This document shows, piece after piece, positions 3,156 to 6,100 of a stretch of DNA of 64,000 bases. The translations under genes were made by a program, and so were the position numbers. The notes beneath the pieces are model-generated. The model had not been told where the DNA came from and ran no database searches. It worked only from the letters and a program-made list of their open reading frames with translations. The stretch comes from Macrostomum lignano (taxonomy: Eukaryota): positions 1 through 64,000 of the forward strand of contig NIVC01001560.1 in the NCBI GenBank assembly GCA_002269645.1, written 5' to 3'. Each line of letters starts with the position of its first letter. The first letter of the stretch is position 1.

Positions 3156-6100
3156 ATGAACTTCGGCAGCCTGTTTGGCGGCAACAAAGCCCAGTCTAGC
3201 GGCGGCGGCAGCGGCGGCGGCGGCGGGGGCGGCGGTTTTTTCGGCGAAGCAACAAAATTTCTGGGCTCGGTGGCTGACCAGGTCACCGCCACGGTCACCG
3301 GAGAGAATCTGGTGCAGGACCAGCAGGCGCAGGCGAAACAGCAGGCGGCAGCGCAGGGCCGCGGCAGAGGGCGCGGCGGCGGAGCGCAGCAGCAGCAGCC
3401 GGGCATGCAGGGCGGAGTTCAAAGACAGCAGCAACCGCAGCCTCCGGCCAACCGGATGGTTCAGCAGGGTCAGATGGGTCAGATGGGTCAGCAGGGTCAG
3501 ATGGGTCAGATGAGTCAGAAGGGTCAGATGGGTCAGATGAGTCAGAAGGGTCAGATGGGTCAGATGGGTCAGATGGGTCAGATGAGTCAGAAGGGTCCGA
3601 TGGGTCAGCAGGGTCAGATGGGTCAGCAGGGTCAGATGGGTCAGCAGGGTCAGATGGGTCAGCAAAGCCAGCTGGGTCAGCAGGGTCAGATGGGTCAGCA
3701 AAGCCAGCTGGGTCAGCAGGGTCAGATGGGTCAGCAAAGCCAGCTGGGTCAGCAGGGTCAGCTGGGTCAGCAGGGTCAGGTGGGTCAGCTAGGCCAGCTA
3801 GGTCAGCAAGGCCAACTGGGTCAGAAAAGCCAGCTGGGTCAGCAAAGTCAGCTGGGTCAGCAAGGTCAGTTGGGTCAGCAAGGTCAGTTGGGTCAGCAAG
3901 TTAGGGTGGGTCAGCAAGGCCAGCTGGGTCAGCAAGGTAGGGTGGGTCAGCAAGGTCAGCTGGGTCAGCAAGGTCAGCTGGGTCAGCAAGGTCAGCTGGG
4001 TCAGCAAGGTCAGCTAGGTCAGCAAGGTCAGCTGGGTCAGCAAGGTCAGCTGAGTCAGCAAGGTCAGCTGAGTCAGCAAGGTCAGCTGGGTCAGCAAGGT
4101 CAGTTGGGTCAGCAGAGTCAGCTGGGTCAGCAAGGTCAGCTGAGTCAGCAAGGTCAGCTGAGTCAGCAAGGTCAGCTAGGTCAGCAAGGTCAGTTGGGTC
4201 AGCAGAGTCAGATGGGTCAGCAAGGCCAGCTGGGTCAGCAAGGCCGGCTGGGTCAGATAGGTCAGATGGGGCAGATAGGTCAGCAGGGAGAGGTGGGTCA
4301 GCTGGGTCAGCATTGCCAGTTGGGTCAGCAGGATCAGCTTGGTCAACAAGACCAGTTGTGTCAGCAGGATCAACTGGGTCAGCTGGGTCAGCAGGATCAG
4401 CAGGATCAACTGGGTCAGCTGGGTCAGCAGGATCAGCAGGGTCAGGTGGGTCAGCAAGCCCAGTTAGGTCAGCTGGGTCACCAGGGTCAGATAGGTCATC
4501 AGGGTCAGATGGGTCAGCATGGCCAGTTGGGTCTGCAGGATCAGCTGGGTCAGCAAGGCCGGCTGGGTCAGCAGGGTCAGATGGGGCAGATGGGTCAGCA
4601 GGGAGAGTTGGGTCAGCTGGGTCAGCAGGGTCAGATAGGTCAGATGAGTCAGCATGGCCAGTTGGGTCAGCAGGATCAGCTTGGTCAACAAGACCAGTTT
4701 TGTCAGCAGGATCAACTGGGTCAGCTGGGTCAGCAGGGTCAGCAGGGTCAGCTGGGTCAGATTGGGCAGAGGGGTCAGCAGGGTCGGCTGGGTCAGCAGG
4801 GTCAGGTGGGTCAGCAAGCCCAGTTAGGTCAGCTGGGTCACCAGGGTCAGATAGGTCATCAGGGTCAGATGGGTCAGCAAGGCCAGCTGGGTCAGCAGGG
4901 TCAGCAGGGTCAGATGGGTCAGCATGGCCAGTTGGGTCAGCAGGATCAGCTGGGGCAGCTGGGTCAGATAGGGCAGATGGGGCAGATGGGTCAACAGGGT
5001 CAGCTGGGTCAGCAAGGTGAGATAGGTCAGATGGACCAGGTGGGTCAGCAGAGCGAGCTGGACCAGATGGACCACGCAGGTCGCTATGGTCAGACCGGCT
5101 ATTTCAGTGACTACTACTACTACGGCGATAGCCAGCAGCCGTCTTATGGTTACCATGACAACCAGTATCAGCAGCAGCAGCAGCGGTACGGCTACGATCA
5201 AAATGACCAATACGGCCAGCCCATGAACAACTACGGCCAATACGGTCATGGCCGATATGACTATGACCAATACGATGCCGGCGGCCCATACGGCGACTAC
5301 GGCGATCGGTACTACGAGTCGCAGTACCAGCAGGGTTACGGAAGCCACGGCGCCACCGGAAATTGGAGTCGCTACAACGAAAGCCGGCCAGAGGAGATTG
5401 TAGGTCGACGGAGGCTCTCGTCGGGACACGAGCAGCACCAGCAGCACCAGCAGCAGCAGCAGCCGTACCAGCAGCAGGACTATTACCAGGGCATGTCAGG
5501 GACACAGTCGGACTATTCCAGCGGCTACGGCAGTGGCTACCAGCAGAGCGGCTGGCAGCAGGACAGCATGAACATGTCTAATCTGACCAGGGAGATTGTG
5601 GCCGCTTATAGCAATCAGGACGCCACGTTTGACAGCGGCTACGATGGTGGAGGCTACGGGCTTGGAGGTCAGCACCAGCAGGACTATTCGGGTTACGCGT
5701 CGGATGCCAGCCATCAGCAGCAGCAGCAGCAGCAGCAGCAGCAGCAGCAACCAGCAGGTGGTGCGAACTCTGCGACGGCGGGCACTTCTTGGGGAGGCAC
5801 AGATCAGGTGACACCCTACGGGGATCAACAGCAACAGCAGCAGCAACAGCAGCAGCAGCAGCAGCTAATCGCGTTGCAGAAGGCTGAAGATCTCAACGAT
5901 TCCAATGTGCAGATGTGCCGCGAGTTCATGACTCGCTACGTTGATCTGCTGTTCAATAATAGGTGCGTGAGCTGCTGGGTCAGTTGATAGATAGATAGAT
6001 AGGTAGATAGATAGATAGATAGATAGATAGATAGATAGATAGATAGATAGATAGATAGATAGATAGATAGATAGATAGATAGATAGATAGATAGATAGAT

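Follow-up and report, generated by a model that had tools for sequence, protein, structure and literature searches.

Gene structure and family membership

The first 64,000 nucleotides of contig NIVC01001560.1 of the Macrostomum lignano assembly GCA_002269645.1, read on the forward strand and here called the window, contain a KIAA0513-like gene in which a long array of Gly-Gln-X triplets and a Tyr/Gly/Gln-rich segment precede an SBF2-type domain. The window contains an uninterrupted plus-strand open reading frame (ORF) at 3156..5987 (943 aa), the last codons of which read across a canonical donor (TAATAG/gtgcgt), so that exon 1 extends from the first ATG to this donor, at 3156..5962 (+; 935 codons and 2 nt). 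By composition, it opens with a G/Q/A-rich segment of 104 aa with a Gly run (3156..3467), inside which lies a short RGG motif, GRGRGRGGG (aa 68-76, nt 3357-3383). A coding minisatellite of 182 G-Q-X triplets (546 aa) occupies 3468..5105, with an 18-nt base unit (GGT CAG CAG GGT CAG CTG) that encodes GQQGQ[L/M/I/V] and with higher-order duplications, and is followed by a Q/Y/G/S/D-rich low-complexity region of 255 aa with two poly-Q runs (5106..5870). The initial annotation of this DNA, made from the sequence alone, had described a single exon of about 2.8 kb with more than 500 residues of such a repeat and a Tyr/Gly/Gln segment; we recover both, the latter with its Tyr-rich motif YGYDQNDQYGQPMNNYGQYG at aa 678-697 (nt 5187-5246), within the 255-aa region. 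After the Tyr-rich region the same frame reads ...VQMCREFMTRYVDLLFNN and ...CREFMTRYVDLLFNN, the latter of which aligns with KIAA0513-like proteins, and alignment with homologues places the start of the SBF2/KIAA0513-type domain, LIALQKAEDLNDSNVQMCREFMTRYVDLLFNN, at 5871..5962, where AlphaFold2 predicts a helix with a block-mean predicted local distance difference test score (pLDDT) of 76-89.

Most of intron 1 consists of a (GATA)n microsatellite (5986..6618, 83% matches and 5% indels), which serves as a non-coding comparator for the array. Exon 2 (6675..6723), SHMIAQQEKANFGQMCQ, has GT-AG borders and a consistent phase, and fits the ISQxEKAKFGExCQ stretch of the homologues. Exon 3 (7332..7518) carries the core of the SBF2-type domain, GRHWFAK...LFECNEAKDW..., and shares 55% identity with the Macrostomum lignano protein P0001. 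Beyond it, two conserved exons were obtained by tblastn of homologues against the window followed by reading of the splice sites, namely exon 4 (8167..8320), ...YLYSFLKDHPIWQSLQFWSAAF..., and exon 5 (10258..10352), GYLVKMRAFELRRDLLVEFVQKQCALLGLPP. A tentative last exon with the stop codon, exon 6 (10498..10691), is phase-consistent and has a good acceptor, and it bears a weak likeness to the C-terminus of the homologues. In this gene model, whose last exon remains tentative, all exons lie on the plus strand with GT-AG borders and consistent phases, and the predicted protein has 1161 aa.

The spliced C-terminus (216 aa) scores 30.2 bits on the Pfam SBF2 family PF12335, above the curated cut-off of 22.1 (E 4.6e-7), with its residues 20-151 matching profile positions 23-148 of 227. 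This match emerged after exons 4-6 were added, as Pfam gave no SBF2 match for exons 1-3 alone (111 aa), and a word-indexed homologue search with a 138-aa C-terminus returned no match. A phmmer search with the 111-aa piece against 1.84 billion representative sequences retrieved 91 matches, 39 of them at E <= 1e-10; the best (E 1.2e-17) is a Macrostomum lignano protein with 55% identity over one exon. Among ten sampled matches, seven are named KIAA0513-like, SBF2 domain-containing or SBF1/SBF2 domain-containing; the named relatives belong to molluscs, a priapulid and a flatworm, and the entries from Lingula, Mya, a nemertean and Owenia are uncharacterised. PF12335 is present in all ten top homologues tested, and an alignment of six sequences (the C-terminus and five homologues) has 37 invariant columns. 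Since the Pfam score lies above the cut-off, the relatives carry these names and the invariant columns are retained, membership of the C-terminal part in the KIAA0513/SBF2 family is supported at the level of sequence. A KIAA0513-type domain in frame after the repeat, as the initial annotation had read it, is thereby supported, and the comparison of the spliced C-terminus with Pfam SBF2 and KIAA0513 relatives, which it had suggested as a check, gave the family match.

With KIAA0513/Krang proteins (zebrafish Krang, human KIAA0513) the product shares the same SBF2-type domain, with 30-55% identity to invertebrate KIAA0513-like proteins and the invariant motifs GR.WF, FEC.EA.D, PIW and FW.AAF, and likewise a disordered region before the domain. 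It also resembles them in lacking DENN, PH-GRAM and phosphatase-like domains: Pfam finds only Collagen and SBF2 in the gene model and none of the DENN, PH-GRAM or pseudophosphatase domains of MTMR5/13, with the last and any upstream exons being uncertain. It differs from them in a shortened variable loop (linker) inside the domain and in an N-terminal motif of some members that we did not detect here. A search of sequences in the PDB with the domain profile detected no solved structure (best E 0.51).

The 5' end of the gene is less clearly defined. A probable 5' leader lies at 3055..3155 (+), after a strong acceptor-like site (...cccctcag/TAAATT, 95% pyrimidine) that stands 101 nt 5' of the first ATG, with no intervening ATG. 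The frame of the ORF is open further upstream, at 2913-3155 (+), for 81 codons that include no start codon, back to a stop at 2910-2912, and this stretch spans two strong acceptor-like sites (3021 and 3055); judging from these signals, an upstream coding exon, or trans-splicing, is conceivable. The N-terminal motif of type F.S[VM]..KKNGL.S.IS.K is found in only some family members and is not universal. A hidden Markov model (HMM) built from 14 homologue N-termini gave nothing significant for it in the six-frame segments of the window, and a conserved motif before the repeat was consequently no longer invoked as proof of the start codon. On direct reading, the N-terminus of the protein, MNFGSLFGGNKAQSSGGG..., has no hydrophobic core of the signal-peptide type.

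The Gly-Gln-X array and its reading frame

Residues 105-650 (nt 3468-5105) form 182 consecutive triplets that keep one register throughout. The first position is glycine in 146 of the 182 triplets and otherwise serine (16), aspartate (14), cysteine (3), alanine (2) or valine (1), which means that glycine is replaced in 36 triplets (20%); the longest run with no such substitution is of 16 triplets. The second position is glutamine in 164 (90%), and the third is mostly glutamine (68), leucine (57) or methionine (28), followed by isoleucine (8) and valine (7). The array is thus rich in glutamine (42%) and glycine (27%), with at least 17% aliphatic residues and methionine, and contains, in 546 residues, a single proline, a single tyrosine, 11 lysines and arginines and 18 acidic residues. 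Tandem Repeats Finder describes it as 88.6 copies of an 18-nt period, with 79% matches and 0% indels, and higher-order duplications are visible, such as those in the 3' half that are offset by 342-360 nt and have 88-89% identity. The Pfam Collagen family PF01391 matches the array in eight stretches (E 2.4e-45), a likeness that the earlier reading had not remarked upon.

The initial annotation had pointed out that the repeat has no stop codon, although each Gln codon is one C>T change away from one, and our counts bear this out. There are no stops in the coding frame of the array, against 21 and 3 in the other two forward frames. In a neutral simulation (2000 runs), in which change from the local consensus followed the substitution spectrum of the array itself, 12.0 +/- 3.4 stops were expected in the coding frame and a value of zero was reached in none of the runs, and frame +1 stayed near neutrality, with 21 stops observed for 19.3 expected. 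The test is conservative, because the spectrum is already depleted of C>T changes at Gln codons; nevertheless, the true significance is weaker than the raw simulation figure, because the copying of variant units makes the events non-independent, although there is no doubt about the direction of the effect. The register is also unshifted over 1638 nt, whereas the non-coding arrays of like divergence in the window mostly have 1-9% indels. Scanning of exon 1 revealed a single donor-like site and, at a threshold of 65% pyrimidines or more, no acceptor-like site, and the homologues always have coding sequence before the domain. Given the zero stops, the lack of frameshifts and of an internal acceptor, and the pre-domain coding sequence of the homologues, it is very probable from the sequence that the repeat is translated as part of exon 1. 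The ORFs on the reverse strand and in the other frames of the array were rejected as by-products of the repeat.

From the absence of stop codons the initial annotation had argued for selection of the repeat as protein. The part of this claim that concerns the reading frame stands, with no stops and 0% indels; the part that would make the repeat a functional module does not follow, because selection on the downstream domain in the same ORF would impose the same constraint, and the constraints on stops, frameshifts and splice sites might be explained by nothing more than the requirement that translation reach the SBF2-type domain. The residues of the repeat themselves appear only loosely constrained, since glycine is replaced in 36 of the 182 triplets. 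Differences within the array fall mainly on third codon positions (104), then on first (53) and second (28) positions, a distribution that resembles a coding signature; the use of these counts as a proxy for the ratio of non-synonymous to synonymous change (dN/dS) was rejected, as inherited unit variants copied along the array confound them. Synonymous G>A changes in the middle Gln codon (7) are rarer than non-synonymous G>A changes in the Gly codons (16 and 14). Glutamine and hydrophobic residues alternate in 127 of the 181 neighbouring triplet pairs, against 76 +/- 6 on shuffling, and this alternation was likewise rejected as independent evidence of selection, because it follows from the 18-nt DNA unit.

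Predicted structure and resemblance to known repeats

AlphaFold2, run on single sequences as monomers, predicted no secondary structure for 300 residues of the array (mean pLDDT 40.1) and a mean pLDDT of 46.5 for the Tyr-rich region, where structure was restricted to SNLTREIVAAY (5577..5609, +) and to the first helix of the SBF2-type domain. This short predicted helix, the sole structured island of the Tyr-rich region, could be a short interaction motif. In a charge-hydropathy calculation, all three N-terminal regions came out as disordered and the domain as folded. The two predictions are weak but concordant in suggesting that the repeat and the Tyr-rich region are disordered.

What the array has in common with collagen (PF01391, including bacterial collagen-like proteins) is its Gly-X-Y register, kept through 182 triplets, and its high score in Pfam. 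It differs in having about 20% of the glycine positions substituted, one proline and few charge pairs, as well as in the lack of a signal peptide (on direct reading) and of a trimerisation domain (by Pfam) and in an architecture of the cytosolic type. A triple helix requires an uninterrupted glycine at every third residue and stabilising imino acids or charge pairs, and neither feature is present here.

The initial annotation had compared the composition with wheat high-molecular-weight (HMW) glutenin and with FUS-type domains, and the comparison holds for composition only. HMW glutenins are built of PGQGQQ, GYYPTSPQQ and GQQ units, with turns based on Pro and Tyr, and have Cys-bearing end domains. 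They share with the array the richness in glutamine and glycine and the GQQ tripeptides. The GQQGQ[LMIV] unit, however, lacks proline and tyrosine (one of each in the whole array), so that the PGQG-type turn is missing, and the protein has neither Cys-bearing terminal domains nor a signal peptide; glutenins were absent from the database matches of the whole ORF. As for the QGSY domains of the FUS family, the composition fits in part: the region at nt 5106-5870 is enriched in the same four residues, with 25% Q, 15% G, 13% Y and 9% S besides 8% D, and has motifs resembling SGYGSGYQQSG, and the short RGG motif lies at aa 68-76. This tail is nonetheless more acidic than the FUS domain (26 D+E among 35 charged residues in 255 aa), contains seven [GS]Y[GSQDN] motifs and is fused to an SBF2-type domain, with no RRM or zinc finger. 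By sequence, the array also resembles the QG repeats of yeast Rnq1 (PMC3783105) and the repeats of Sup35 in being composed of Gln/Gly-rich tandem oligopeptides that adjoin a Tyr-rich Q/G segment; in comparison with the yeast Q/N-rich prion domains, it is far longer and more regular, with a hydrophobic residue at every sixth position and almost no asparagine.

Absence from homologues and origin of the array

No similar repeat occurs in any of the 61 representative homologues whose pre-domain region could be measured. Their pre-domain regions are Ser/acidic-rich and at most 470 aa long (median 193 aa), with glutamine not exceeding 9% and a longest G-x-x run of 3, whereas here this region reaches 930 aa, with 34% glutamine and 22% glycine. 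A word-indexed search of 5.8 billion proteins with the whole ORF also found no protein with the same repeat; the matches were collagen-repeat proteins that covered 2-41% of the query with 28-65% identity, together with a protist-like receptor with a QMG-repeat tail. The statement in the initial annotation that such a repeat is not known from KIAA0513 homologues therefore survives both comparisons. No orthologue closer than 55% identity was found in the protein collections.

The window holds about 30 other tandem micro- and minisatellite arrays, with periods of 4-187 nt and many of them 90-98% identical, among which are those at 11160-13577 (19 nt, 128 copies), 14359-16653 (26 nt, 91 copies), 34324-35306 and 45206-46414. 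Other genes in the window encode long poly-Q runs, such as the run of about 34 Gln in a SoxB-type gene. The abundance of tandem arrays and of poly-Q genes in the same window points to a mutational origin of the repeat. An origin by amplification of mutated poly-Q tracts was proposed for the QG repeats in Rnq1 and in further prion domains (PMC3783105), and amplification of a mutated CAG-rich tract would be the simplest origin of the present array.

Interpretation

We consider it likely, with some reserve, that the locus encodes a KIAA0513/Krang-type protein carrying a repeat expansion that is tolerated, disordered and lineage-specific, rather than a protein of a new kind. The gene is of the KIAA0513/Krang type, with a conserved helical SBF2-type domain at the C-terminus after an N-terminal region predicted to be disordered, and in this lineage the N-terminal region would have been overtaken by low-complexity sequence. 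An 18-bp coding minisatellite would have grown, by slippage or unequal exchange, to 182 G-Q-X triplets, next to a Q/Y/G-rich stretch with poly-Q runs. The repeat would be transcribed and presumably translated within exon 1, and stops and frameshifts would be kept out since either would remove the essential downstream domain. The repeat region would then act as a long, flexible and weakly self-adhesive spacer with no fixed fold; weak multivalent self-association is probably to be expected of such a composition.

A conserved cellular role probably resides in the SBF2-type domain. Zebrafish Krang/Kiaa0513 is a maternal factor linked to cortical granules at egg activation, and the SBF1/2 domain is its conserved part (PMC11302925). 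By homology to it, the flatworm protein may have a role in secretory or cortical granules; beyond this zebrafish study (PMC11302925), we found no functional genetics of the family.

Several observations weigh against a merely tolerated expansion or leave it less secure. Since we did not detect the N-terminal motif of some homologues, the true 5' end is uncertain, and the nearest relative shares just 55% identity, over one exon. At 79% matches the array is old and still strictly periodic, with a middle Gln retained in 90% of the triplets and with alternation in 127 of 181 pairs, which could reflect selection on the peptide in addition to homogenisation of the DNA. Finally, the AlphaFold2 runs on single-sequence monomers are blind to multimeric order.

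The age and periodicity of the array, together with its middle Gln, would also fit an explanation in which the repeat and the Tyr-rich tail serve as a prion-like or condensate-forming module, selected for self-association, that clusters the SBF2-type adaptor, for instance on granule membranes, by multivalent Gln/Tyr contacts. The composition of the repeat (Q 42%, G 27%) and of the tail, the SGYGSGYQQSG-type motifs, the short RGG motif, the predicted disorder of both regions and the QG repeats in the prion domain of Rnq1 (PMC3783105) agree with it. This support is, however, purely compositional, and the tail is fairly acidic, with 26 D+E in 255 aa and seven [GS]Y[GSQDN] motifs. Since no homologue has such a region, the function of the family does not need it, and the genome-wide tendency to tandem arrays and poly-Q seen in the window could yield such sequence with no selection; we therefore regard a selected module as rather unlikely, and the "condensate-forming or elastomeric adaptor" proposed in the initial annotation as conjecture. 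Still less probable, and indeed hard to credit, is that the proline-free (G-Q-Q-G-Q-hydrophobic)n array forms an ordered cytosolic multimer, be it a non-canonical collagen-like helix, a polar-zipper or beta-solenoid fibre or a reversible gel, that scaffolds the SBF2-type adaptor on secretory granules; if true, it would represent a novel type of structural repeat inside cells, under selection for material properties. A proline-free collagen-like triple helix in a trimerising protein would account for the unbroken Gly-X-Y register of 182 triplets, for the PF01391 match over eight stretches and for the collagen-repeat proteins among the top database matches. We nonetheless hold it to be extremely unlikely: 36 of the 182 triplets have S, D, C, A or V in place of glycine, with 16 triplets in the longest clean run; there are one proline in 546 residues and few charged pairs (11 K+R, 18 D+E); the N-terminus lacks a signal-peptide-like core and no trimerisation domain was found; and a PF01391 match is expected of any G-x-x periodic low-complexity sequence, whatever its fold.

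Two further explanations concern the gene model itself. The repeat might be missing from the mature protein, being spliced out as an intron within the exon or skipped through use of a promoter or start codon further downstream, and its open frame would then be incidental. Many in-frame Met codons lie within and after the repeat, the N-terminal motif of some homologues was not found upstream of it, and the consensus has no stop in any forward frame, which makes open frames partly cheap. Against this, stops are depleted in the coding frame alone (0 against 12 expected) and frame +1 fits neutrality, 1.6 kb show no frameshifting indels, unlike most nearby non-coding arrays, exon 1 has a single donor-like site and no acceptor-like site at the pyrimidine threshold used, and the homologues always have at least about 30-470 coding residues ahead of the domain, which together make a bypass of the repeat improbable. 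We give almost no credence to the array being an assembly artefact or part of a decaying gene copy. Assemblies are prone to err in long tandem arrays, conservation of the tentative last exon is poor and the domain has a shortened internal linker; yet 79% matches with structured higher-order variants are atypical of an artefact of collapse or expansion, and the exons are all intact, with canonical splice sites and the invariant residues kept.

KIAA0513/Krang is conserved in metazoans and its biochemistry is almost unknown, and the present gene indicates that the region before the SBF2-type domain can take up about 800 residues of Gln/Gly/Tyr low-complexity sequence. Because these residues were absorbed with the domain left intact, the view of the N-terminal part as a disordered, freely evolving spacer is supported. 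The locus offers a clean natural case of a coding minisatellite kept in frame over 1.6 kb in a genome full of tandem arrays, and a useful one for the origin of poly-Q-derived repeats and prion-like sequences, although its interest would remain modest unless the array has an ordered or material function.

Other features of the window

Downstream of the KIAA0513-like gene, an exon of a separate gene at 18996-19904 (+) encodes an ALK/LTK glycine-rich domain (PF12810, E 1.4e-8), with a weak PAN-like segment before it. The SoxB-type HMG-box gene mentioned above is a single-exon gene at 24174-25373 (-), with several His runs in addition to its run of about 34 Gln; its HMG box has up to 95% identity to SoxB proteins of many animals, and its top search matches are inflated by poly-Q. 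Poly-Q insertion seems common in this genome, and further open frames, at 27380-27850 (-) and 63384-63998 (+), contain long runs of poly-Q and of poly-His or acidic residues and have no family assignment. A rhodopsin-family G-protein-coupled receptor (PF00001, E 3e-25) is encoded in one long ORF at 41216-43105 (-) and has a very long, Ala/acidic-rich third intracellular loop. An open frame of 403 codons at 50397-51605 (-; 365 aa from the first Met), of normal amino-acid complexity and with no Pfam match, may be an unannotated single-exon gene. At 58414-59010 (-) lies a CCDC24-family exon (PF15669, E 1.2e-19), the 3' part of which overlaps an array at 57524-58624 (74 nt, 15 copies, 96% matches); the exon carries the repeated peptide SSSRELCADFELTICPP in frame and may represent a second minisatellite that abuts or enters coding sequence.

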